Assembly (NCBI GenBank): GCA_965202585.1
Contig: OZ241828.1
Span: 16,120,001-16,184,000 of the forward strand
Reading direction: 5' to 3'
Source: Thalia democratica
Lineage: Eukaryota
DNA length: 64,000 bases
Part shown: one piece after another, positions 480-64,000 of the stretch
Position numbering within the stretch: position 1 is the first letter of the stretch
Layout of the letters: each line of letters begins with the position of its first letter
Position numbers and translations under genes: made by a program
Notes under the pieces: generated by a model
Database searches by the model: none
Told to the model about the DNA's origin: nothing
Seen by the model: the letters and a program-made list of their open reading frames with translations, nothing else

Positions 480-2880
480 TTCAACGTTATTTCAACTTAG
501 ACTGACTTTTAAATATAATTTCAAGAAATCATTAGATTAGCAAATCATCATTCTTAAATATAACCTTAGAATTAAAAAAAATAGCAATAAATAACTGAAA
601 AATTTCGAATTGGTTCTTAGAAAAATAAAAATTAAGTGTTCTTTAGTTAAGTGTTCTTAAAACACATTTGAAGTATTATGTTGTTCTTTATGAACTCAAA
701 TTTGTGAGAAATGTTTAAACTTATTTTAAGTCATCTAGGAGTTGCTACCTAAGTGCATTTCTCCTTACAGATTATATTAATACTAAGCTAACAAATTCTT
801 AGGAGGCATTCTTAATATAATCTTTTTGTCAATTATTTTCCTATAAAATACATTATTGTCTTTTTTATATCAATCTTTAAAATAATTTACTTTCTTTAAA
901 TTTTTTTAATCAAAATTTCCTTTTTTTTTATTTATCTATTATTTTTTTAAGGTAGAAAAACACCAGAAAATACCCACTCTCCCCTCTGCAACGATAGACG
1001 ATTTCTTGTCTAAATTTAATTATAGAATGAAATGAGGCAAATGTTAAAAAAATTAAAAATGCTAAAAAGATATTCTAATTTTAATATAATTGTGTTAATA
1101 AAATCTTAGCTTTATAAATTTTTTTTTATTTATTTCGTGTTTTATACAAATTTTTTCGTTTGAAAAATAAAAAGTGTTCTAAATTCTAGGTTCGTACATT
1201 ATTTTGATGGTTTTGGTACAAAATTAATCAACTCTTAATGTTTTACTGTAAACCAACAAAACTTTTAACATTGCAACTTCAAATCTAACTCTAAATTTAT
1301 TTTGTTTTTAAAACTACCGTCTTTAACATAAAATAACATCTTAAGCATAACATTTTGAATAGTTTTTCTCGTTTTGTATAAGTTTAATAAAAAACAACTA
1401 ATATCTCTATGTATGTTATGTGATACAATATACTATACAAGTGTGAAAAACGTAATGAAGAGTATAAAAATTATCGCTAGTTACTTCAAATTCAGTCAGA
1501 CATTAAAAATTTGAGTCAGCAAAATGTAATAAATTGTATTTTTTATCTTGTTTTTTTAACTTTAATTTTTGATATGTTTCGGTTAGGTTGGATAGAGAGA
1601 AGGCTATCAATAAACTAATTATCAACAAAATCTTTAAAAAGGCTGCTAAATCATTATTTTTATAATTTTTTTCAACCTTTTTTTCAGCTTAGACTGACTT
1701 GTGAATATAACTTCAAGAAGTCATTAGATTAGCAAATCATTGTTTTTATATATAATCTTTAAACTTAAAAAAATCACAAAAAAATAACTGGAAAACCTGG
1801 AATTGGTTCTTAGAAGAATAAAAATTAAATGTTCTAAAGTTAAGTGGTCTTAAGTTAAGTGTCGTTAAAAGAATAAAAATAAAATGTTAATAAAACACAG
1901 TTAAAGTATGATGTTTCTCGTGATGTACTCAAATTTGTAAGATGTGTTTAAGCTTATTATAAGTTATCTAGGAGTAGCTACCTAAGTGCATTTCTCCTTA
2001 CAGATTATAAAAATGTCTAGCTAACAAATTCTTAGGAGGCACTCCTAACATAATCTTTTTATTAATTATCTTCCTATAAAAAACATTATTGCTATTTATT
2101 TTTAGTTTCTTATAAAATATTTTACTTTCATTTCGCCGTTTTAAATTAAGTTTTTTAATTTTAAATTAAAACATTAAATAAAATTAGGCAGATATTAAAA
2201 TAATTAAAAGTGCGAAAAAGATATTCTAATTTTAATATAAATGTTTTGACAAAAATTTTAAGTTTTTTATAATTTTTTTTTTATATATTTCGTACTTTTT
2301 ACAATTTTTTTCGTTTGAAAAATAGAAAGTGTTCTAAATTCTAGGTTCGTACATTATTTTGATGGTTTTGGAACAAAATTAATTAAATCCTAATGTTTTA
2401 TTGTAAACTAACACAACTTTTTACCTTGCAACTTCAAATCTAATTTTAAATTTATTTTGTATTTGAAACTACCGTCTTCAACATTAAATAATTTATTAAG
2501 TAGAATATTTCAAACTTTTTTTTTTGGTTTAGTTTAAGTTTAATAAAAAACCACTAGTATCTCTATGTATGTCATGTGGTACAATGTACTATCTAAGTAT
2601 GAAAACGTATTAAGAGTAAAAAAATCATTACTAGTTTACTTCAAATTCAGTCAGACCTAAAATAATTTCACCAGCAAGAGAAAATAAATTTTAATTCTTT
2701 TTTTTTTAACTTAAGTTTATGCTAGGTTTGTTAAGAAAAAGTCTACAATTTAACTATTAATCATCGACAAAAGCTTTAAAAAATTTGTTAAGTCTTTTTT
2801 TTTTCAACGTTTAATCAGCTTAGACTGACTTTTAAATATAATTTCAAGAAATCATTAGATTACCAAATCACCATTCTAAT
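480..2880 (+). repeat. Tandem ~1.15-kb units of a locally amplified AT-rich repeat
   Basis: The motifs AAATCATTAGATTAGCAAATCA (526, 1720, 2850), CTAGGAGTTGCTACCTAAGTGCATTTCTCC (735, 1968), TGCAACTTCAAATCTAA and TTCAGTCAGAC recur in the same order. Confidence 0.85.
736..814. other. Conserved imperfect hairpin within the 1.1-kb unit. Copies at 736-814, 1969-2047, 11717-11794, 12732-12809 and 61528-61606; degenerate copies at about 19672-19752 and 41322-41403.
   Basis: 5' arm TAGGAG-T-TGC-TA-CCTAAG-TGC-ATTT pairs with 3' arm AAAT-T-CTTAGG-AG-GCA-CTCCTA across a ~32-nt loop. Function unknown. Confidence 0.55.
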
Positions 2881-5800
2881 ATATAACCTTCAAATTAAAA
2901 AAATATCGCAAAATATAAATGAAACAACCTGGAACTGGATATGTTTTATAAAAAGTTAATCAAAACCTAGAAATTTTAATTAACATGCATCAAAATTAGT
3001 GAAATTAAAAAAATTTAATTGTGGTGAAAACAATAGTAGCCTAATGATAATAATTAAGCTGCTACAACCTGTAAATTCTTTAAATGGTTTTTATAGAACC
3101 AAATTTTCATTAGAAAAACTATTTTAAAACGGCTTATAGGTTATGCAACTTAAGTTATGTTTAGGCACTACTTAGGTATTAATAAGGGTATATTTATAAA
3201 GCTCTAAATTTAGTTTATCTATATTTTATTACAAACTAATAAGAGCTAATCCCTCGCAAGAGCTTAACAACTTAACATAATTAAGAGATTTTTGTTTTAA
3301 ATAAATATTGAGATCTTAGCAGGCAAGAAAAAGCAAACAATTTTATTTTAATAATTAGTAAACATAAATTTACAACAAAAAAATTTTAAGCATCAGAAAT
3401 CAAAATAACAACAGTTGATAATGTAACATTTTTTTTATAAAAACAATATGTTTAACGTAAAAGACAAAGTTGAAAGTTTTCGAAATATTAAGAAGATTTT
3501 AAACAGTTTTTAAACTATTTATTGCCAACTGTTGTTTTTTAAAAAGAAAGAAAATAGTGTGATAGATTTAATTATTCAACTGATAATGAACTTCATATCA
3601 AATGAACTTTATTATAACATATCATACTTATGTGTAAAATAAAAGTTAATAATATACTTGCACGCTTTTCAAAGCTATTTAAAAACTTATAATAATTATG
3701 TTATAAACTGTATTATTTCATTAAAAAGTATAATAAAATTAAGTTGAAAGATTAAGTTATAATATTTTAAAATTTCTTTATAAATCGCGTTAGTTAGTTA
3801 AATTATCAAATTTTAAGACTGTAAATTTAGTACTTTTTTCTAAATTAAAATGAACTTTTAATTCAATCTAATATCTTGTAATTAATTTATTATATCTAAT
3901 AACTAGTTGTTTAATTTTTTTAAAAAACTTGATAATTAATGAAATATTTGATTTTAGTAAAACTCTTATTTCATTTCTAAGTTGTTAAAGTTAAAAATTA
4001 TATCTTTATTTACAACTATATCATGATGTTTTTAAGATAAAAAAGATTACATTTAATATACCAAAATATACTTTTAATTCTGTTTTAAGTAACTTGATTC
4101 CGTAAAATTTAAAGTGTTGTTGTTGTTCTTTCTAATAAGCATGTTATGTTAAGAAAATATATTTTCGTATGTTTAATTAGATTTATAGATATTAATCAAC
4201 TAAGTGTTTAATAGTTTAATTATCATTTTATTAACAAACTTCTCGTTTTGTAGTAATAGTTTTGAATAGAGTTTAGTTTTTTCTTAGAGTAAAACCTACA
4301 AAGAATGTTTTCTTAATTAAGCTATCCAGCCAGTAATTTTTTAAATTATGAAACAATATCTAGTTGATACTAGTTTGAACTGGTTTTAAATAGAGAGGTT
4401 AGCTATATTGAGTAAGTTTTTGCTTAATTTGATTACTTAATTACTTAATTTAATTATTGGCACTTAAGTATTTTAAGTCTTAAGTACTTAAATAATGAGT
4501 ATAAATAAAATTATTCTACAATAAAAGGAAACTCAATGGTTAAAAAACCATACTGTTTCTATAAGTTAATATAGTTTTTTACAATTTTGTTTCTTTATAA
4601 CAGATAGGCTAACTGATTCTAGTTTAAAATATTTTGAAAACTCAGAATAACTCAGTCTAGTTTGTGATGTGTAAAAATTCAGGATAATTTAAGCAAGCTT
4701 ATATGTATAAAATTCATAAAAAACTAGTTTACTGATTATTTAAAATAAATTTATTTATATACTTTTGAAGTTAATGAAATTTTCTAAAATTGAATTAAAA
4801 AAAATATAAGATGACTTTTTATGGTTCAAAACTCAGAATATCTTTTTACTCAAAGAGTGGCAACCCTGACTCTTTATTTTTATCATTAATAAAGTACCAC
4901 AACATTTTTACTAAAGTTTGTTAATTAAAAGGTACAACAGTTTATTCATCACAGTGGTAAAGGTAAATGGTATTTTTCAAAATCTAGATAATTCATTACT
5001 ATTTTCAGTTGTAATAAAAGAAAAAAAAGTGTTGAAACAGTTCAAATGCTTACTCACATACTCAGTTTGCTTGAAAAATTATATAATAGTTATCCATTTC
5101 ATTTAAAAAATCTAAAACCAATTGTTTTAATGCTTTCTCATGATTTTTGCTCAATTTTTTATTTATTTTTTGTGAGGTGTTTCCATAGTTTGTAGGGTAA
5201 GGATTGTGGTACACTTAATTTATTGACCCTCCTCGTTTTTATTAAACCCTACATTATCAAAATACTTAAAAATACTATGTGATAATAATAACATTTTAAT
5301 ATTATTATAATATAAAATATTAACTAATTATATTTATATTATAATAAATATATGAAACAAGTTTATTTTATATAAATCAGATAAGACAACTTTAGTAGTT
5401 TATATTTAAAAAGAAAGAACCACAGAAAATTATTAACAAAATATAAGTTAATTTTTTGAATAACTTAAAATAAAAATAACTTTATAACATTTTAAGTTTA
5501 AAAATAAAATACTGTATAACTTTAATTAATGTGAACTATAAAATATTGAAAGAACTTTTAAAACAAAACATTTTATTACAAATTTTAGTCCTTACTATCA
5601 TCTATAGATGCAATTTATAAGCTTTTAGTTTCTTCTGATAAAAGATGAAAGTAGGACTTATTTTTGTAAAAAATATTTTCTTTTGTCGATTACTATAATT
5701 GCAATTTTATTGTCAATACGATGGACCCAGGCATCAAAACCTAGGCCACTAAAACTGAAAGATGTATAAAATGAAGAAGAAAAATTACTCAAATAGTTTA

Positions 5801-34924: not shown

Positions 34925-36975
34925 AATGTTTATATTTATTGTTGCTTCGAGTTTATTGATCCGTTTACTTTCTAAAAAAATCTAAGTTTGAATAATTTTT
35001 AGTGGTGTCTACAAAGATAGTTGAAAAAGCTTCTTTTAAATCTTTTTTTGATGTTTTTGAAAATTTAGTAATATGTATATTTAAAATATAGTATTTAAGT
35101 TTTTTTTTCAGTTTTATTGTTTTTCTTTTTTTTTAACTTTACTAAGCTTGTTTTCTTTACCATTGTATCTTTGCAAAGCAAACATTAACCACAAGGGGAT
35201 GAAATTCCTTCTTCATTATTAACTTCATGAGCTATTTTCTTGTAGTTAGTTAGTAAAGTTGCAATAGTCTGCGGTCGTTTGTTTGTTATCATCACGGTTT
35301 GATTCAATTTGTTTTCTCTTTCTGTTAATTTAAGCCAGTTCGGAAAGATTGTCGTCCAAATGCTTATGTTTTTGTTACTTTACTTCGTTCTTTTTGTTGG
35401 TGGTCTGAACCGATCTTTCCACTTTTCTTTTTTTCCAGCATCTCTACTACTAAACCCTCGCAAAAGTATGATTTTATGCACTTATCTTTTAATAGTTTCA
35501 AAGCTTCCAAATAATCACAATCCCGTTCACAAAACCTTCTTAATCTTATAGATTCGCTAAATACAATAGATTTGTAAATTGAGCGAGGATGATAAGATCG
35601 ACCATTTGTGTAAACCCTATTGATAGCGGTAGGCTTTATGTAATTTCTTACATAAAACCCACCTTTTTCTTCTTCATCTATGATGTGATTGACATCTAAA
35701 AACTCCAACTCTTTGTTTTTACTTTGGTGAGAAATTTCTCTAAAAATAAGTTTTAAATCATACTTCTAAAACACAAATTTAAGTTTGTCTTTGATATTAT
35801 CTTGCTGTTCTTGTGATTTTGGCTGTTCTTGCTTGGGTAAAAAAGATAATGTCATCGATATAACGATTGAAAAGTATTGATGTTTTTAAAGTTGTTTTAA
35901 CTTGTAATATTATATGATGTAGTGCAATATTGGCAATTGAAACAGAATTGTTATCTTTGGTAACAATTCCGTTTTCTTGCTAATAGAATGATGTTCCGTT
36001 TTGCACTACTACATTTTCTAAACAAAACATTGTAAGATTGACTAAAGTTTTGTTTAACTTTTTTTGAATAGTTTGTGCACTTTTCGATTGCATTTGACAA
36101 ACTAATTTTAACTAATTCTCGACTTATGTTAGTGTATAAGCCTTGTACATCTGCAGCGACTAAAATATTTTTTGTTGATTCAAATATTTTGTGGTAGACT
36201 TTTTTTCCATAAATCTAAATCTTCTAAATAACTTTTGCTGTCTTTAGAGTATTCATTTACATCTTATTTAAAAAATTTAATACTTATTGGTTTAAATAAC
36301 ATTTCTAAAAAGCTTGTAACTCTTAAAGTGGTTATGTTACCTGCAGATTGTACTAGTCGAGTTGGTATTTCAAAAATTTTTGTATTCAAAACTTCTGAGT
36401 TATTTAATTTATGTGTTTTAAACAGTAGGTAAGCATATGCAGGTTCGTTACAGTGAAAGTGTTTGGCCATTGTTCCTTTTAGTTATGAGTAAATACCGTT
36501 TTTATGTTTGATTCCGATTGTATGTTTAAAATTTTATAATCTATGCAATTTAGTTTATGTAAATTTATAATCGAGTCATAAAATTTTTCGCGTATGTTTT
36601 TAAAATGCTTTTAATAGTATTTTCATTTAGTGTGTCTAACTTCTTAAACACTTCAAGCTCTCGACCCATTATTTTTTTGTAGTCATCAAAGTTCAGAACT
36701 ACTAATTTACCATCTTTATCTGATCTACATATTACTTTATTTTTGTTTCTTACTTGTTCATTTAATTCAGTTAGTGATATTTTAATTTTGATATTTAAAT
36801 TGTTTCTTTTAATGTATTGTTTTTTAACTTGTACTTCTAAGTTTCTTATTTTATTTGTAGTTATAGTACAATAAGTTTTAATTTTTTCATCAACTAGAGC
36901 ATTTATGGGTCGATTAAGTTTTTCTATTTTTAATTGTTTAGGTAAGTGAGTATAGTTTAAGTCAATTTCTTGGTT
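34925..36975 (-). mobile_element. Decayed Penelope-like retroelement (RT plus partial GIY-YIG endonuclease)
   Basis: Minus-strand motifs in order: SDKDGKLVVLNFDDY; LLFKTHK...IPTRLVQS; LVAADVQGLYTNIS (about 36122-36165); RYIDDI (35851-35862); EFLDV; YIKPT...SYHPRSIYKSIV; PCG*CLLC; LDFLESKRINKLEATININ. It interrupts the sequence downstream of GNAT paralog 2. Confidence 0.85.
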
Positions 36976-53204: not shown

Positions 53205-54289
53205 TTTAAAATAAGTAGAACTAAACACATTCATGCAACAAAATAAATAAAAGTTAAAAAATATATTATGACGTAGTACTTCAAAAATGTGTATAAAACT
53301 AAAATTTTAAAAGCTAGATGATTTTTTACATTGTAATGGTATTTTTGTATGTAAAAGTAAATTAAAATGAAATGCGTATAAAAACAAACACTTTACCGAT
53401 ATAAACTTTAAATCAAAACCTATCTTAGTAAAGAAATGTTTGATGTAAGATATTGTTAATAAATAATTACTGCTATCGGCGAAATAAAAATAAAAACTTT
53501 TCCCAAACAATACTTAAAGTTGTTACAAAAACCTATATTAATAAGAAGCTGTATTTTACAAACTTCTTATCTTAAAGAAATAGTTTTATCCATGAATAAA
53601 AATAACTATTTTGAAACAAAACTTAAATCTAAGTAAGATAATAATACAAAAAATATATAAAAAATTAAATTAACTTGTTTCAGTAGCAAATTATTTATTG
53701 TAATATATTGTTTTTTAAGGTAAAAATTTTATCAAATAAACAAACGTTTAAAAACTATTGTGAAATAAAAATTATTCTTATTGAAACTATCCTATTAAAA
53801 ACCGATTACTCTAAAATTATTGATTTTATAAGTTTGCTATTATCTATAAAAAGGCAGTACTGTTTTATTTATGTTTTACTTGCTTGTAATAAATTAACCC
53901 ATTATGTTGGCGTAGTGAAGTTTGAGTGCAGCTCGTAAGATACAGCTTCTTATTAATACAGGTTTTTGTAACAACTTTAAGTATTGTTTGGGAAAAGTTT
54001 TTATTTTTATTTCGCCGATAGCAGTAATTATTTATTAACAATATCTTACATCAAACATTTCTTTACTAAGATAGGTTTTAATTTAAAGTTTATATCGGTA
54101 AAGTGTTTGTTTTTATACGCATTTCAATTTAATTTACTTTTACACACAAAAATATCATTACAATGTAAAAAATCGTCTAGCTTTTAAAATTTTAGTTTTT
54201 TACACAGTTTTGAAGTACTACGTCATAATATATTTTTTAACTTTTATTTATTTTGGTGCATGAATGTGTTTAGTTCTACTTATTTTAAA

Positions 54290-54329
54290 GTTCACTGATG
54301 AAGGACTGTTGTCCGAAATTAATTTAAAC
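54290..54329 (+). ncRNA. Minimal type I hammerhead ribozyme-like motif (right arm)
   Basis: GUUCA-CUGAUGA-A-GGAC-UGUU-GUCC-GAAA-UUAA-U-U-UAAAC. Stem II is perfect; stem I has one mismatch. Confidence 0.55.
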
Positions 54330-55639
54330 AAAATGTTGCAATAAACTAATAGATTTTTAAACCATCGTTTATTTATTTTTTGTAACTACTGATGCAGGGA
54401 AAAAAATCACCAGTAAAAACAATTGACTTGTGTCCTGGACCGATTTGGAAATTATTTATAAATCTTTTAGTATATAAAAAAATATTGTTTTGTATAAACT
54501 AAGTAGTATTATAAAAAACTAGCATATTATCATGAACAAGTTTTTTTTTTTTCCAAAAACTAAATAGAATTTAAAAATCTAGGTAAAATTTACTTTAATT
54601 TTATTTTCCAAATATCAGTTGTAAAACAAACGATTTTAAACATTGAAAAAAAATATTTATTTTAATTTACTACAACCTTTCTATATAAACTTAGTAAATA
54701 TAAACTAAAATCTTAGATATATAAGGCACATGATAATTGACATATGAAACAAACACTTTAATCCTGTACTCTTTTGTACAAGTTTGGTTGAAATTCTTGA
54801 TGCTTTACAAATATAATCCGTGATTAATAATGTAAAATGGACTAATGTTGTATTTTAGAATCACTTAGTATAAATACAAAATGCTAGCAAATAATAATTG
54901 TTGTATAAAAATTCTTTTAGTTTAAATTATAACAGTTTTTTTTCTTAATAGTATACTTAAAGTAATCAGAAATTATATAATAATGCAACACGGAAAAAAT
55001 TGAAATTTTAAACGCAAAAAAACGGAATATTTACACAGAAGGAATTAATTACAAAGAGGATGTTTGCATTGTGGAAAACAACTAATTAAAAAACTGTGTT
55101 GGTATCGTAGTAGTATATTGTTTAAAATTTACTACTCATGCTATCCTACGTAATATACAATCATTGTATAAATTTTATTTTACTTATAAATTAAAACTTA
55201 AAAGCGCTTAGAAGTGAGAACGCTTAGACGCTTAGAAGACGCTAAAGAAGCGCTTAGACGCTGAAACGGTTGTTCAAGGCAAAAGTTTATCACTTGTTAC
55301 TAAGTCTGTACATATTTGTTTATTTACTTTTAAAAGAAATGCAACGAATTATAGCTTATACTAACACAACACTATAGTTTCGTGAATCTTTTTTAGAGCT
55401 TCAAATTGCGGGGCATTTTTTGCTATCTCCTTTCTGAATTAAAAAACATTGTCATAAAAACAAAGTTTCATAAACATAAGTATAAAGTTGCAGCCTCTGG
55501 TCGGCTCTAAGCCAAGATAGCAAAACTCAAACAAGTAAATTAAGAAAAAAAGTTCGGTCAAAACTTTCATATAACAAATAAACTAAAATTTAATGTTTAA
55601 TTTGTAAGTTTTGAAACTTATAAATGTCTGTTTTTATTT

Positions 55640-55952: not shown

Positions 55953-56444
55953 AGTAACGCATCCTTTATAGATCATTCCAGTTGAGTTGCCCACTTAGTT
56001 ATAAATAACTGAATTTGTTTTAATTTCAACAAGAGTATAAACATATATTGTTAATCTAAACAAAAATACAAATCAGGTAGATATAAAGTTTATTTCTTTA
56101 GAGCATAAGTTCTAAACACAAAACTAGTTACAACAGCAGAAAACAGGTTATGTAGGTATGTTTATTATTGAAGAAATTTCTATATGGTATCCATCTTGAA
56201 ATCATTTACAAAACGATAAAAAAGTATGTAATTAAAAAAAACATATGCGTATAGAAAATAACTAAACATATTTTAAAAGTTTGTTCACCATAGAATTATT
56301 TATTTTAGCACAAAAAAAAATTCATACTAGAAGCTAATCAACTTTTAATAAAGTGTTCGAATAATCTCTAACTAAGTAATGTAGTAGACAAAATGAAAAA
56401 TTAGTTTCAGTAAATACTGTATACATCATGCAAGTTCATTTGAT

Positions 56445-58662
56445 TTAATTTCTTTTCTTTTTCTTTTCCTCTTGTCGTTTGTTATTGAACCAACACTGTA
56501 AAAAGAAATGTTAGTTAGTAATTTATGTAAAAATATCAATCTAATTCTTTGAATGGAGAAGAAAAAATACAACTTCATAATTATATTAAAAGACTAAAGA
56601 GGGTTATTATTATTTTTTAAATTAATTAAAGTATAAATACATAAAATACACTTGAATCTTCGAAGTGTCCTAAAAAAAAACTTCTCTCTATCTAAAAACA
56701 ACATAACAATTAAAAAATTTTAAATCAGGTTCTTTTATATAAAAACAAACTATTTACTCTGCATTTATTTTCAGGCAGGCCAATTTTTTCGACAAGTTCA
56801 AAAAACTCTTTTTTGTTTGGTCTTCTATTTTCCCTGTTAGTTTTTTCGTACAGTTCTTCGAAACATTTCAACTGATGTGAAGTATAGCTGGTGCGGAGTC
56901 TAAGTTTTGAAACGTTTTTCATTATAAGTAATAGCACTTTTATTTCAATATATGTTTAAACATACAAACTTAATCTTCATTGTGTGTTGAAAACTAGTTT
57001 TGATTGTCAAAAAAACATTTTTTACGTGTTTTTATAACTTTGAAATTTTTAAATAAAACTCTTACCTTTTCTTATATTTTTTCGTTTTCTGGTCTATGAC
57101 ACAGGACTCCCTTGCTAAAATATATTATTAGGTAATTTTTTGTATATGTAATTTATCAAACTTACTTAAATACAAAATTAATGATTTTTTAAAATCTAGG
57201 TAGAAAATATGTTTTAGAAACACTATTGTTTTTTTGGTCATATTTTTCAACTTATTTGTTTTAAATACTAGGGATAACAAACAAACTAACTATTATTTTC
57301 AATGAGTTTAATTTCTTTTGAATAAGTTGCAAGAAAGTGTTTAAATATTTCCTCATGATTACCTCCCTTAATCTTCTCAACTGCAATACCTTGACTTTTA
57401 TCTTTATGTATTCTATTTTGAAACCAGGACTGAAAAATATTGAAAATATTAGAACTTATTTAAATTAATGTATTAACTTTTAGTAAAAAATAGTAAACTT
57501 TTATTATTTCTTTTATTACATGAACTTGATAAAAAAACAAACTTACTGTTAGTTCTCTTTTACTAAGACCAGTTAATTTTCCAAGTTTGTCCTTTTGATC
57601 TGGCAGTGGGTGTTTAATTCTTTCATAAAAATATTCTAACATTGATGATTGAGAGAATGTTAAATGTATCCTTTGTCTGTATGTAAAATCATACTTAAAC
57701 TTTCCGAATTTTCACACATTAAAATATTTAAGTTAATTTAAAAATTCAAATAAATTAAACTTATAAACTAGTTAAACTTTCTATTAGTTTAAAGTTTTGA
57801 ATTTACTAACTTTCGTTTTTTTAGTTTAGATTCCTGCTCTTTACATTGTTCGTTGGAATTATCAAATTCAAGTTTTAAATTATTATTTAAAATCGATGCA
57901 TCGGATGAAGGTTCTGAAACTTTTTGCTGCAAACACCACTTTCCAAGGTTGGCATCTATAGATGATAAATAATAATTGACTGCTAAGAAAAAAAAAATAT
58001 TTTTCAAATAAAAAATTGAATTAAAGTTTACCTTTCATAGAGGGGTATGCACGTGGCAGTTGAGCAAAATTATCTGCTTGAGCAGGATTAACCGTTGTTA
58101 CATTGAAATTATTTGCACAAGAAGGTTTAAGCTGGATACCACCTTGCAAACAAGTACTCAACTGCTGGTAGTTGTCAAAACATCTGTGTGGCTGGTAACA
58201 GCTGTTCGTATTTGATTGACAATTTTGTTGTTGATTATAGTCAGAAGAAGAAGTTAATGTATGATAGTTTGAGTAATTAGGTATGCCACCTCGTTGCGCT
58301 TGAAATGTACAATTCTGAACATTTTGATACAAAGGCTGACCACTTGCACAACTTGGATAACTTCCATATTGATGTTGCACTGTGTAGCTAGGAGCTTGAT
58401 TTGTCGAAGAAAACACAGCGGGCTGACAACTTTGTTGCTCGTTTATATTCATTCTATTTTGCTCATCTTGCTTTAAACTGTTTGTTGCAGTTAGCGCGAA
58501 AGAACCAATGCTTTCTATTTCGCGTCTAATAAAGTCGTTATCACACATTTTTGAAAGTATTTTTTCTTGGTCTTCTAATGAAAGCATATTTTCATCATTA
58601 TGTAGAAATGGTAGAACGTCATTACTACTGTTTTGAGACAAATCGTTGTATTTTTCCGACAT
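56445..58662 (-). CDS. Double-homeodomain transcription factor, 437 aa. Exons 58662-58032, 57982-57811, 57676-57547, 57429-57291, 57114-57066, 56899-56758, 56495-56445.
   Basis: All six introns are GT-AG with matching phases and the spliced frame is open. HD1: KRKQRIHLTFSQSSMLEYFYERIKHPLPDQKDKLGKLTGLSKRELT/SWFQNRIHK. HD2: KKRLRTSYTSHQLKCFEELYEKTNRENRRPNKKEFFELVEKIGLPENKCR/CWFNNKRQEEKKKKRN*. The last intron has a TACTAAC branch point. The N-terminal region is Q/N/S-rich. Confidence 0.85.
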
Positions 58663-61160
58663 TGTTGTATTTATTTTTTTTATAGCTTAGCAATTAATCT
58701 GAAAGAGTAACTTTTCTTAAAATGTTGTATTTAATAACACAAAAAGTAAAACAATGACACAAAAAAAAAACTCAATTGTTTATTTTGTCCCGTAGAAATA
58801 TGGATTCTAATTAGTTTTTTAAATTTTGAATTAATAATGCAATTTTATAATGACCCGCAATATCTAACTAAAATCTTATTTTGAATTTCAATCAAAAATT
58901 TTAGAATATAAAGTAAAAGCTGTAAAATATATTTAGCGGTGGTGCAGCTTTATATTTCGCGTGCTGGACTCAACTAAAATTATAAAAAGCTACTCGGTTG
59001 GTCATTTCCTATTCTGCGGGCCTCCCACTCTATTTTACCGAGTTACTTAATTCCACAGATTAAATCAAAAACCAATATTACTTTTACCAAAACAAGTTTT
59101 ATGTCAAATAATTAAAGAAAATATTTACTAAAAAATATTTATCTTTAATTTATCAAACTTACTTAAATACAAAATTAATGATTTTTTAAAATCTAGGTAG
59201 AAAATATGTTTTAGAAACACTATTGTTTTTTTGGTCATATTTTTCAACTTATTTGTTTTAAATACTAGGGATAACAAACAAACTAACTATTATTTTCAAT
59301 GAGTTTAATTTCTTTTGAATAAGTTGCAAGAAGGTGTTTAAATATTTCCTCATGATTACCTCCCTTAATTTTCTCAACTGCAATACTTTGACTTTTATCT
59401 TTATGTATTCCATTTTGAAACCAGGACTGAAAAAAATTGAAAATATAAGAACTTATTTAAATTAATTTATTAATTTTTAGTAAAAAACAGTATACTTTTA
59501 TTATTCTTTTTATTACATAAACTTGATAAAAAATAAACTTACTACTAGTTCTCTTTTACTAAGACCAGTTAATTTTCCAAGTTTTTCCTTTTGATCTGGC
59601 AGTGGGTGTTTAATTCTTTCATAAAAATATTCTAACATTGATGATTGAGAGAATGTTAAATGTATCCTTTGTCTGTATGTAAAATCATACTTAAACTTTC
59701 CAAATTTTCACACATTACATTATTTAAGTTAATTTTAAAAAATTCAAATAAATTAAATTTGTAAACTAGTTAAATTTTCTATTAGTTTAAAGTTTTAAAA
59801 ATGTTTTTTTATTGTTTTGTTTGATATTTAAAAAAGATAATAGTTAAACTAACTTTTGTTTTTTTAGTTTAGATTGCTGCTCTTTACATTTTTCTATGGA
59901 ATTATCAGATTCAAATTTTAAATTATTATTTAAAATCGATGCATCTGATGAAGGTTCTGAAACTTTTTGCTGCAAACACCACTTTCCAAGGTTGGCATCT
60001 ATGGATGGATAAATAATAATTGCCTGCTAAGAAAAAAAAAAAAATTTCAGTTAAAAAATTGAATTAAAGTTTACCTTTCATAGAGGGGTATGCACGTGGC
60101 AGTTGAGCAAAATTATCTGCTTGAGCAGGATTAACCGTTGTTACATTGAAATTATTTGCACAAGAAGGTTTAAGCTGGATACCACCTTGCAAACAAGTAC
60201 TCAACTGCTGGTAGTTTTCTAAACATCTGTTTGGCTGGTAACAGCTGTTGGTATTTGTTTGACAATTTTGCTGTTGATTATAGTCAGAAGAAGAAGTTAA
60301 TGTATGATAGTTTGAGTAATTAAGTATGCCACCTCGTTGCGCTTAAAATGTACAATTCTGAACATTTTGATACAAAGGCTGACCACTTGCACAACTTGGA
60401 TAACTTTCATATTGATGTTGCACTGTGTAGCTAGGAGCTTGATTTGTCGAAGAAAACACAGCGGGCTGACAACTTTCTTGCTCGCTTATATTTATTCTTT
60501 TTTGCTCATCTCGCATTAAACTGTTTGTTGCAGTTAGCGCGAAAGAACCAATGCTTTCTATTTCGCGTCTAATAAAGTCGTCATTACACATTTTTGAAAG
60601 TATTTTTTCTTGGTCTTCCAATGAAAGCATATTTTCATCATTATTTAGAAATGGTAGAACGTCATCACTACTGTTTTGGGACAAATCGTTGTATTTTTCC
60701 GACATTGTTGTATTTAGTTTTTTATAGCTTAGAAATTAATCTGAAAGAGTAACTTTTCTTTAAATGTTGTATTTAATAACACAAAAAGTAAAACAATGAC
60801 ACAAAAAAAAAAATACTCAATTGTTTATTTTGTCCCGTAGAAATATGGATTTTTATTAGTTTTTAAAATTTTGAATTAATAATGCAATTTTAAAATGATC
60901 CGTAATATCTACCTACAAACTTATTTTGAATTTCAATCAAAGATTTTAGAATATAAAGTAAAAGCTATAAAATTGATTTATCTTTCGCGTGCTGGATTCA
61001 ACTACAATTTTTAAAAAGCTACTCGGTTGGTCATTTACAATTCTGCGGGCCTCTCACTATATTTTACCGAGTTACTTAATTCCACAGATTAAATCAAAAA
61101 CCAATATTACTTTTACCAAAACAAATTTTACATAAAATAATTCAAAAAACATTTACTAAA
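57145..61160. repeat. ~2.0-kb tandem duplication of the homeobox gene's 5' half plus proximal upstream DNA (57145-59140 / 59145-61160)
   Basis: Both units begin TTTATCAAACTTACTTAAATACAAAATT and end AAAA(T/C)ATTTACTAAAAAA. Confidence 0.9.
59288..60705 (-). pseudogene. Partial disabled copy of the double-homeobox gene (exons 1-4 only, HD1 only)
   Basis: Exon 1 (60705-60075) has CAA>TAA at 60343-60345. Exon 2 has a +1 frameshift near 60005. HD1 helix 3 reads WFQNGI. Exons 5-7 are absent. Confidence 0.85.
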
Positions 61161-64000
61161 AAACTGATAAGTACCATTGAATACAGAGTCAATAGTTATT
61201 ATAGCTGATTGATAAATACAAAAATTTATAACAATATTTAATTATAGTACTAATCATTATTTTTATAAACGTTTTTCCAGCTTAGACTGTTTTTAGATAT
61301 AATTTCAAGAAATAATTAGATTAGCAAATCACTATTCTTAGATATAAGCTACAAACTAAAAAAACTGAAAAACCTAGATTTGGTTCTTAGAAGAAAAAAA
61401 ATTAAGTGTTTTTAAGTTGAGTGTTCTGAAAAGAACGAAAATAAAATACGAATTATTTTTGTTTATTATTATTTAAACTTGATATATTCAAATTTTTAAG
61501 ATATGTTTATGCTTATTATAAGTAATCTAGGAGTAGCTACCTAAGTGCATTTCTCCTTTCAGATTATACAAATGTTAAGCTAACAAATTCTGAGGAGGCA
61601 CTCCTAACATAATCTTTTTATCAATTATCTTCCTATAAAAAACTTTATTGCCTTTTTTATGATTTTTTTTAGAATATTTTTGTTTCATTTAAATTTTTTT
61701 AATCAAAATGTCTTGTCTAAATTTAAATAAAATTAAAATTAAGCAAATATTAAAAAAATAAATGTGGTAAAAAGATATTCTAATTTTAATATAAATTTGT
61801 TAATAAAAATTCTGAATTTTATATTTTTTTTTTTCATTTATTTTATATTTTATAAAAATTTTTTTGTTTGAAAAATAAAAATTGTTCTGAATTCTAGGTT
61901 CGTGCATTTTTTTGATGGTTTTGGAACAAAATTAACTAACTCTTAATGTTTTATTGTAAACCAACAAAAATTTTTACCTTGCAACTTCAAATCTAATTCT
62001 AATTTCATTTTGTTTTAAAAACTACCGTCTTAAACATGAAATAATTTATTAAGTAAAATATTTCCAACTTTTTTTTTGATTTTGTATAAGTTTAATAAAA
62101 AACCATTAATATCTCTATGTATGTTATGTGATACAATATACTATACAAGTATGAATAACGTAATGAAAAATATAAAAATTATCGCAAGTTTACTTTAAAT
62201 TCAGTCAGACCTAATAAAGTTGATACAGCGAATGATAACAAATTGTATTTCTCATCTTATGTTTTTAACTTTAGTTTTTGATATGTTTCGGTTAGGTTGG
62301 TTAGGAAAAAGGCTATTAATAAACTATTAATTCAAAAGTTTTAAAAAGGTTGCTAAATCATTATTTTTTTCAACGTTTTTCAGCTTAGGCTAACTTTTAA
62401 ATTCAATACAAGAAATCATTAGATTAGCAAACCATTATTTTTATATTTAACCTTGAAATTAAAAATTTATCGCAAGTATAACTGGAACAATCTGGAATTG
62501 GATATGTTTTATAAAAAAAATTTAAATTATTATAATATAACCTAGAAATTTTATCTAACATGCATTAAAATTAGTGAAATTAAAAAAATGTAATTTTGGT
62601 AAAAACAATAGTAGCCTAATGATAATAATTAAGCTACTACAAACTGTATATTCTTTAAATGGTTTTTATAAAACCAAATGTTCAGTAGAAAAACTATTAT
62701 AAAACGGCTTATAAGTTATGAAACTTTAGTTACGGCTTATTACAAACTAATAAGAGCTAATTCTTCGCAAGAGTTTAACAACTTGTCATAATTAAAAGAT
62801 TTTGTTTTGCAAAGATATTGAGATCTTAGCAGGAAAGAAAAATCAAACAATTTTTTTTAATAATTAGTAAACATAAACTTAAAACAAAATAAATCTAAAG
62901 TAACTGAAATCAGATAACAAAAATTGATGACCTTTTTTATAAAATATATATATGTTCAACGTAAAAGTCAGAAGTAAAAGTATTCTAAATATTAAGAACT
63001 TTTGAAACAGTTTTTAAACTACTTATTGCCAACTGTCGTTTTTTAAAAAGAAAGAAAATGGTGTGATAGATTTAATAATTCAACTGATAATGAATTCTAT
63101 GTCAAATGAACTTTATTATAACATATCATACTTATGTGTGAAATAAAAGTTAATAATATACTTGCACGCTTTTCAAAGCTATTTAAAGACTTATGATTAG
63201 TATGTAATAAAATGTATAATTTTATTAAAAATATAATCAAATTAAGTTAAAAGATTAAGTTGTAATACTTTATAATTTCTTTGTTAATCGCGTTAGTTAA
63301 TTAGATTATCAAATTTTAAAACTGTAAATTTAGTACTCTTTTTTAAATTAAAATGAATTTTAAATTCAATCTAATATCTTGTAATTAATTTATTATATCT
63401 AATAACTAGTTGTTTAATTTCTTTGAAAAACCTAATAATTAATGAAATATTTGATTTTAGTAAAATTCTTATTTCATTTCAATATTTTTAAAACTATAAA
63501 TTATATCTTTATTTGCAACTATATCATGATTTTTTTAAGATAAAAAAGATTACATTTAATTAAATTATCAAATTTTAAGACTGTAAATTTAGTACTCTTT
63601 TCTAAATTGAAATGAACTTTAAATTTAATCTAATATTTTGTAATTAATTTATTGTATCTAATAACTAGTTGTTTAATTTTTTTGAAAACCTAATAATTAA
63701 TGAAATGTTTGATTTTAGTAAAACTCTTATTTCATTTCTATGTTGTTAAAACTATAAACTATATCTTTATTTGCAACTATATCATGATGTTTTTAAGATA
63801 AAAAAGATTACATTTAATATATCAAAGTATACTTTTAATTCTGTTTTAAGTAACTTGATTCCGTAAAATTTAAAGTGTTGTTGTTGTTCTTTCTAATAAG
63901 CATGTTGTGTTAAAAAAATATATTTTCGTATGTTTAATTAGATTTAAAAATATTAATCAACTAAGTGTTAAATAGTTAAATTATCATTTTATTAACAAAC
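60801..64000 (+). repeat. Upstream block duplicated at 1-4240; includes a local ~260-bp tandem duplication at about 63300-63820
   Basis: Colinear with the window start. TTATCAAATTTTAA.ACTGTAAATTTAGTACTC occurs at about 63305 and 63565. Confidence 0.85.

Follow-up and report, generated by a model that had tools for sequence, protein, structure and literature searches.

A probable lineage-restricted, recently amplified double-homeobox gene family in Thalia democratica and an intact member of it on the C4 sequence

A 64,000-nucleotide stretch of the Thalia democratica genome (contig OZ241828.1, positions C4:16120001-16184000 of the 802-Mb genome, hereafter the window) carries on its minus strand, at 58662..56445, a gene with two homeodomains, which probably represents, as an intact copy, a double-homeobox transcription-factor family that is confined to one lineage, was amplified recently, comprises about 38 loci and has a presumed DNA-binding role. 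In the minus-strand reading of 56400-58720, the gene runs from an ATG at 58662 to a TAA at 56445 and comprises seven exons and six GT-AG introns. The first-pass annotation had given exactly these start and stop positions for a hidden intact gene encoding 437 amino acids; the intact spliced frame stood, whereas the length was not reproduced and the gene is not a single one, as about 38 paralogous loci exist. The exon coordinates apparently used in that model (58662-58032, 57982-57811, 57676-57547, 57429-57363, 57114-57066, 56899-56758 and 56495-56445) yield a 1242-nt frame without internal stop, corresponding to 413 amino acids. An alternative acceptor of intron 1, located 27 nt downstream, leaves the frame unchanged, moves the start of exon 2 from 57982 to 57955 and shortens the protein to 404 amino acids. 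The downstream acceptor (atag/AT) occurs in nearly all family copies of every clade and in metagenome relatives, whereas the upstream acceptor (cttag/CAG, adding nine in-frame residues) is confined to the C4/C2 clade, and the 404-residue protein is therefore the more likely product as judged from the alignments.

Exon 1 (58032..58662, 631 nt, donor AAAG/gtaaac) encodes a 210-residue N-terminus rich in Q, N, S and C; exon 2 (57811..57955, 145 nt with the family-wide acceptor, donor GT in all copies) ends in residues 1-2 of the first homeodomain (HD1) and two bases of its codon 3; exon 3 (57547..57676, 130 nt, AG and GT kept in all copies) encodes HD1 residues 3-46; and exon 4 (57363..57429, 67 nt) encodes HD1 residues 47-60, beginning with SWFQNRIHKDK, and the start of a 22-residue linker. 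The remainder of the linker, residues 1-2 of the second homeodomain (HD2) and two bases of codon 3 are encoded by exon 5 (57066..57114, 49 nt), HD2 residues 3-46 by exon 6 (56758..56899, 142 nt), and HD2 residues 47-60 (CWFNNKRQEE) together with a basic tail and the stop codon TAA by exon 7 (56445..56495, 51 nt), all on the minus strand. The species has a genome of 790.7 Mb with 25.3% guanine-cytosine (GC), the lowest GC content among tunicates (PMC13746493), and the window contains 24.3% GC, with exons of the gene at 34.7% and introns at 18.8%. Given the local base composition, stops should occur at a rate of 0.09 per codon, or about one in 11 codons, and the probability that the 210 codons of exon 1 remain open is about 3e-9; these odds, together with the GC gap between exons and introns, exclude a chance open reading frame (ORF). 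No Pfam family was detected in exon 1, no look-alike was found for it in the ESM Atlas (best score 0.77), and its AlphaFold model has a mean predicted local distance difference test score (pLDDT) of 39.6, with low-confidence helices only, at residues 29-76. The N-terminal Q/N/S/C-rich region of about 250 residues is accordingly modelled as disordered, and the final 40 or so residues of exon 1 are almost invariant among the copies. Upstream of the ATG, a conserved 5' flank at 58663..59116 on the same strand, a putative promoter region, is homologous in paralogues and 70-77% conserved in the distant metagenome contig L039.

HD1 spans 57388..57818 (60 residues) and HD2 spans 56454..57073 (64 residues), both on the minus strand, with residues numbered from W48 and, for HD2, also by alignment. 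According to cumulative exon lengths and the count back from W48, introns 2 and 5 are of phase 2 and interrupt codon 3 of each homeodomain, and introns 3 and 6 are of phase 0 and lie between residues 46 and 47, so that both homeoboxes share one intron pair. The helix-3 signature W48-F49-x-N51 directly follows the 46/47 intron in both, reading SWFQNRIHK in HD1 (Q50, N51, I53) and CWFNNKRQ in HD2 (N50, N51, K52, R53), and HD2 has an insertion of four residues in the loop between helices 1 and 2, as 44 of its residues align to 40 profile positions. Residue R53, replaced in HD1, is a backbone-contacting homeodomain residue. All of these features had been claimed before, namely the intron positions and phases, Q50 with I53, and WFNNKR with the four-residue insertion, and all were recovered; the description of the phase-0 46/47 intron as a PRD hallmark likewise agrees with the literature, where it is the canonical PRD-like splice site (PMC6258689) and also occurs in hbn, rx and otp (PMC2938728).

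Matches to Pfam and to structure databases were scored exon by exon, and relatives were searched with residues 4-46. The proposed comparison with the Homeobox profile (PF00046) was borne out for HD2, whose exon 6 alone scores 23.9 bits (E 3.7e-5) against a cut-off of 22.9, but not for HD1, whose exon 3 alone scores 16.4 bits (E 0.008, profile positions 4-43); the HD1-type exons of paralogues score 22.2-26.7 bits. Residue 50 is S, Q or K in PRD and PRD-like homeodomains, a set that includes the Q50 of HD1 and excludes the N50 of HD2. Among solved structures, the HD1-type profile comes closest to PITX2, GSC, ALX4, Aristaless, Pax3 and Paired, all weak matches (E 0.02-0.16), and the HD2 type to LHX9 (E 9e-4), ZFHX3 (E 0.008-0.04), OTX2, GSC and Engrailed (E 9e-4 to 0.03 across LHX9, ZFHX3, OTX2 and GSC). 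The paralogue homeobox exons gave either scores of 0.76 to HOPX clusters in the ESM Atlas or no match. Exons 1 and 2 match no Pfam family at all, and thus show no paired domain as in the PAX subclass, and no zinc-finger family of the kind expected in the ZF class (ZFHX, ZHX/HOMEZ) was detected by Pfam in any exon. From its sequence HD1 looks PRD-like, while HD2 appears not to be PRD-like and is unclassifiable from residues 4-46.

Genome-wide searches gave 49 matches for exon 1, 38 for the HD1 exon (90-100% amino acid identity) and 35 for the HD2 exon (79-100%), representing about 38 loci on four chromosomes: C4 at 15.78-15.92, 16.04-16.18, 16.84-16.98 and 26.11 Mb; C2 at 11.3-12.1, 89.55 and 91.36 Mb; C7 at 35.3-35.5 and 44.8-45.0 Mb; and C10 at 24.8-24.9 Mb; the family is also present on the unplaced contig C390. 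The C4 loci are arranged in three blocks of roughly 140 kb. The order of the four or five loci is the same in every block, one of the blocks is inverted, and flanks are about 100% identical between blocks, an arrangement that indicates segmental duplication. The gene model was projected onto 43 extracted stretches, 40 of them from the T. democratica genome, and the GT and AG of introns 2-6 were kept in every extracted copy, dead ones included. By strict criteria 13 of the 32 near-full copies are intact, and three others are arguable cases. Copies arise by segmental and tandem duplication and are lost through frameshifts and stops, which is birth-and-death evolution. All copies in the genome are closer to each other than to either of the two outside metagenome groups, which fits recent amplification, concerted evolution, or both, and the family is undescribed and probably lineage-restricted and recently amplified.

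Directly upstream of the gene lies a truncated tandem duplicate (61145..59118, minus strand), a copy of 59116..57117 with 92.5% nucleotide identity. It takes in the promoter region, the first four exons and the greater part of intron 4, and HD1 is its only homeodomain. This duplicate is broken by an in-frame TAA after codon 120 of exon 1 and by a 1-nt insertion in exon 2 (173 nt). The same pair is present in the positionally equivalent loci of the sister blocks (L005 and L020), and the tandem duplication must therefore be older than the duplication of the blocks. In sliding-window comparisons the window copy is a mosaic: its 5' end and 3' third are 98-100% identical to L005 and L020, while its centre (58320-57120) is closest to other family copies and includes tracts of 100% identity with chromosomal neighbours, at 58220-58021 with L006 and at 58120-57921 with L007. 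Family copies thus appear from these tracts to exchange sequence by gene conversion, and because the patch spans the site where the positional equivalents are broken, the open frame of the window copy may itself be owed to conversion.

Selection was assessed in the 13 intact copies, in which exons are 93.8% and introns 89.7% identical. Counted on a maximum-likelihood tree of these copies, the whole coding sequence shows 241 nonsynonymous and 122 synonymous changes, with a ratio of nonsynonymous to synonymous rates (omega) of 0.47 (p 4e-11); omega is 0.26 for HD1 (p 3e-4), 0.33 for HD2 plus tail (p 8e-5) and 0.50 for the N-terminal region. The 22-residue linker has 17 nonsynonymous changes against one synonymous change, a difference that is not significant with so few sites, and both recognition helices are invariant in all 13 copies. 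Marine metagenome assemblies, among them Tara Oceans (PRJEB4352), contain ORF fragments that led to related contigs. One of them, L037, is a dead copy 81-86% identical to full-length genome copies, and in a more distant group (L039 and L049-L052) identity is 70-75% overall and reaches 84-87% across the homeobox exons, the frames being open and the splice sites conserved. The distant group shows a pN/pS ratio (nonsynonymous over synonymous differences per site) of 0.25-0.27 (0.26 for HD1 and 0.25 for HD2) and retains I53 (WFQNRIYK), N50 and the four-residue insertion; exon 7 is conserved in L052 as IWFNNKRQEEKKKKR, and a search with the ORF of the HD2 exon returned one metagenome fragment, P0025. 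These comparisons place the coding sequence, and both homeodomains most of all, under purifying selection, both among the copies of the genome and across lineages. In the same distant lineage, contigs L039 (741-1750), L049, L050 and L051 carry an in-frame tandem duplication that extends from the 3' half of exon 1 through intron 1 into the start of exon 2, and the conserved motif CYQP...FDNYQQ...LQGG...NNFNVT is therefore present twice.

As to the origin of the two-domain layout, HD1 and HD2 are only about 24% identical, with an hhalign probability of 92%, which is no more than for any two homeodomains. Weak matches to the HD1 exon led to two old double-homeobox paralogues, L047 at C8:32.957 Mb (C8:32956001-32965900, exons near 929-1061, 2293-2420, 3809-3941 and 4151-4200) and L048 at C5:12.25 Mb (C5:12249001-12258900, minus strand). 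Their HD1-like exon is 42-50% identical and is followed by SWFQNRRRKDRK (helix WFQNRRRK), and their HD2-like exon is 32-39% identical and is followed by IWFNNRRQ; the order HD1 (Q50) plus HD2 (N50) and the four intron positions and phases are those of the multicopy family, so the double layout predates that family. The N-terminus is Q/N/Y-rich in the old paralogues as well, whereas they differ from the multicopy family in carrying R52/R53 in both domains, a one-residue instead of a four-residue HD2 insertion, a longer inter-domain region and GC-richer exons, and in being apparently single-copy. L047 and L048 are probably conserved founders of the double layout, and on this comparison I53 and the longer HD2 insertion are derived states fixed in the multicopy family. 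A common origin of the two modules, by internal duplication or by tandem duplication followed by fusion, is favoured on the shared introns. The internal duplication proposed by the first-pass annotation remains plausible in this sense as an ancient event seen in gene structure alone, but not as a recent one specific to the window gene, given that the layout already exists in L047/L048 and that HD1 and HD2 have diverged so far.

It is also possible, although doubtful, that two distinct neighbouring genes, one of them PRD-like with Q50 and the other from a different lineage with N50, were fused and inherited their introns from a wider clade. Such a fusion would suit the low identity of the two domains and the difference between their solved relatives, PRD-class for HD1 and a mix of LIM, ZF and PRD for HD2. 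Further HD1-like loci bear on it as well: L041 and L042 (C2:13.68 and 13.87 Mb) and L043 (C6:19.82 Mb) have the same codon-3 and 46/47 introns, with no second homeobox seen within 3 kb, and carry N50 (TWFNNRR) in the former two and K50 (TWFKNRR) in the latter, so that position 50 varies in this lineage-specific PRD-like clade and the intron pair marks the clade and not the window gene alone. The pair is nevertheless uncommon, since among the best 150 genomic homeobox matches 39 end at 46/47 and 33 of these begin at profile position 1, which argues against a codon-3 intron in them; both modules carry the pair in three independent subfamilies, and in mechanism an internal duplication hardly differs from a tandem duplication with subsequent fusion. 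Improbable, in turn, is that the family is genomic debris, a once-functional gene spread by segmental duplications in which all copies drift and the frame in the window is a recent conversion patch. Broken copies, the overwritten centre of the window copy, the dead contig L037 and the lack of RNA and annotated protein are what debris would leave; the low omega of both homeodomains in intact copies (p <1e-3), the pN/pS of about 0.25 against contigs of 70-75% identity with open frames and splice sites, the invariant recognition helices and the clearly higher conservation of exons over introns all argue against drift. Very improbable is an origin as mobile-element cargo, with the copies produced by transposition: copies do occur on four chromosomes, similarity breaks off at a shared downstream point (window 55546) in many of them and many have a repeat of about 1.5 kb upstream, but similarity extends over at least 2.3 kb of upstream and 0.9 kb of downstream sequence, with end points that differ among subsets, the copies still contain their introns, there is no ORF for a transposase or reverse transcriptase in the vicinity (only four ORFs of at least 90 residues are present in the window), and the repeated order of the three C4 blocks is that of segmental duplication. 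Mobile-element origin was rejected on the ground that flanks are homologous over kilobases and their end points vary between copies.

Several observations weigh against an intact, functional family member in the window. Frameshifts or stops break 16-19 of the 32 near-full copies, and the loci equivalent in position to the window copy, L005 and L020 in the two sister blocks, each have a disrupted exon 1. The mosaic could partly be an assembly artefact or chimera in a multicopy region, and the omega values were obtained from copies picked as intact, on a tree whose assumption is broken by gene conversion. At 16.4 bits the HD1 exon taken alone stays below the Pfam threshold of 22.9, and R53 is absent from HD1. 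Three sequencing runs that contain the stretch gave short multicopy contigs over introns and exons alike, without splice joints, and are DNA-like; among 1.8 billion representatives no annotated or transcript-derived protein was found, only metagenome ORF fragments, and an exhaustive exon-1 search for full-length homologues returned five clusters of such fragments and no annotated protein. DNA binding, its bipartite mode and the developmental role are drawn by analogy throughout. The likely reading nevertheless remains that of an intact member of a constrained double-homeobox family. In the proposed mechanism, the disordered N-terminal region of about 250 residues would probably act as the effector or activation part, the two homeodomains may contact DNA next to each other and together form a bipartite reader in the manner of DUX4, their binding specificities may have diverged, as the first-pass annotation proposed, and the family may act in the germline or in early embryos, by analogy with DUX, Obox and ETCHbox; the two homeoboxes would ultimately trace back to a module of three exons that was duplicated within the gene in the distant past. 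A bolder version, which seems unlikely, is that salps or their close relatives possess an independent DUX-like system, a conversion-homogenised factor expressed in bursts in the germline or early embryo, whose N50 and R53-less domains would read a new bipartite motif and which might serve, for example, in genome activation or in the switch between sexual and asexual generations.

Various repeats and other homeobox families were also observed around and beyond these loci. Upstream of the window copy (61250-62730) and of the neighbouring family copy (1000-3500 of the window) there is a repeat of about 1.5 kb. Further copies of it, often several in tandem, are found near the C2 and C4 clusters of the family as well as on C5 and C517. 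The last 465 or so bases of the downstream flank (54000-54465) are a dispersed repeat found in at least eight unrelated places on C2, C4, C5, C6 and C1464 with 92-95% identity, which may be the reason that paralogue similarity stops near 55546. At 35364-35708 (minus strand), one of only four ORFs of at least 90 residues in the 64 kb encodes 114 residues and looks like a fragment of a retroelement-type protein. Intron-less homeoboxes form arrays at C6:69.83-70.22 Mb (at least 11 copies) and C4:36.18-36.71 Mb (at least 12), spaced about 20-60 kb apart; all have the identical Pfam score of 60.3 bits over an uninterrupted profile 2-57 and belong to a family distinct from the double-homeobox one. 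Open frames of 470-918 residues with at least two homeodomain matches each, at C7:51.05-51.81 Mb and on C99 and C604, represent another multi-homeobox family.

Multiplying, fast-evolving double-homeobox genes are known mainly from placental mammals, where DUX genes trigger embryonic genome activation and cause disease when misexpressed, and no literature linking double homeobox genes with tunicates was found beyond general homeobox surveys. The salp family resembles mammalian DUX (DUX4, Dux, DUXA, DUXB and DUXC) in having two tandem homeodomains with a short linker, of which at least the first is PRD-like, and in being lineage-restricted, fast-evolving and present in many copies per genome, many of them dead. 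A further likeness lies in the intron-containing DUX members, which have one intron inside each homeobox, as in DUXA (PMC2211742). Orthology is, however, not detectable, as DUX4 (HD2) matches the HD1 exon of a paralogue at E 0.008 but that of the window gene only at E 0.85-1.4, and no DUX4 chain matches the HD2 exon; since there is no orthology, the DUX-like layout appears convergent, as the first-pass annotation had already proposed. The architectures differ as well, with the salp homeodomains in the last 150 or so residues behind a disordered region of 250 residues, and the DUX homeodomains at the N-terminus with a C-terminal activation domain; the salp family has N50 and a four-residue insertion in HD2 and I53 in HD1; and DUX4 is intronless within a 3.3-kb macrosatellite, whereas the salp copies have retained introns and lie at intervals of 40-60 kb within segmental blocks, in a marine invertebrate. 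Double-homeobox genes also occur in Caenorhabditis (HOCHOB) and in the Dictyostelium group (PMC4901127), which share with the salp family a repeated independent origin in single lineages and divergent domains of uncertain class, although these are different phyla and the comparison is one of description. The ETCHbox (LEUTX, TPRX, ARGFX and DPRX), Obox and Rhox genes are likewise lineage-restricted and shaped by tandem amplification and birth and death, and LEUTX has the canonical phase-0 46/47 intron and an intron at or just before the homeobox (PMC6258689), a likeness to the salp family; these genes have a single homeodomain and documented expression at embryonic genome activation. The salp family is a lineage-restricted variant of this known architecture, an independent, intron-bearing and selectively constrained DUX analogue in a non-vertebrate chordate lineage, with active gene conversion and an unusual N50 recognition helix, and it reveals that the present gene sets of this AT-rich genome lack lineage-specific homeobox genes. 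Set beside DUX, it would offer a natural comparison for why double-homeobox architectures arise, how two homeodomains combine to read DNA and how multicopy regulators are maintained.

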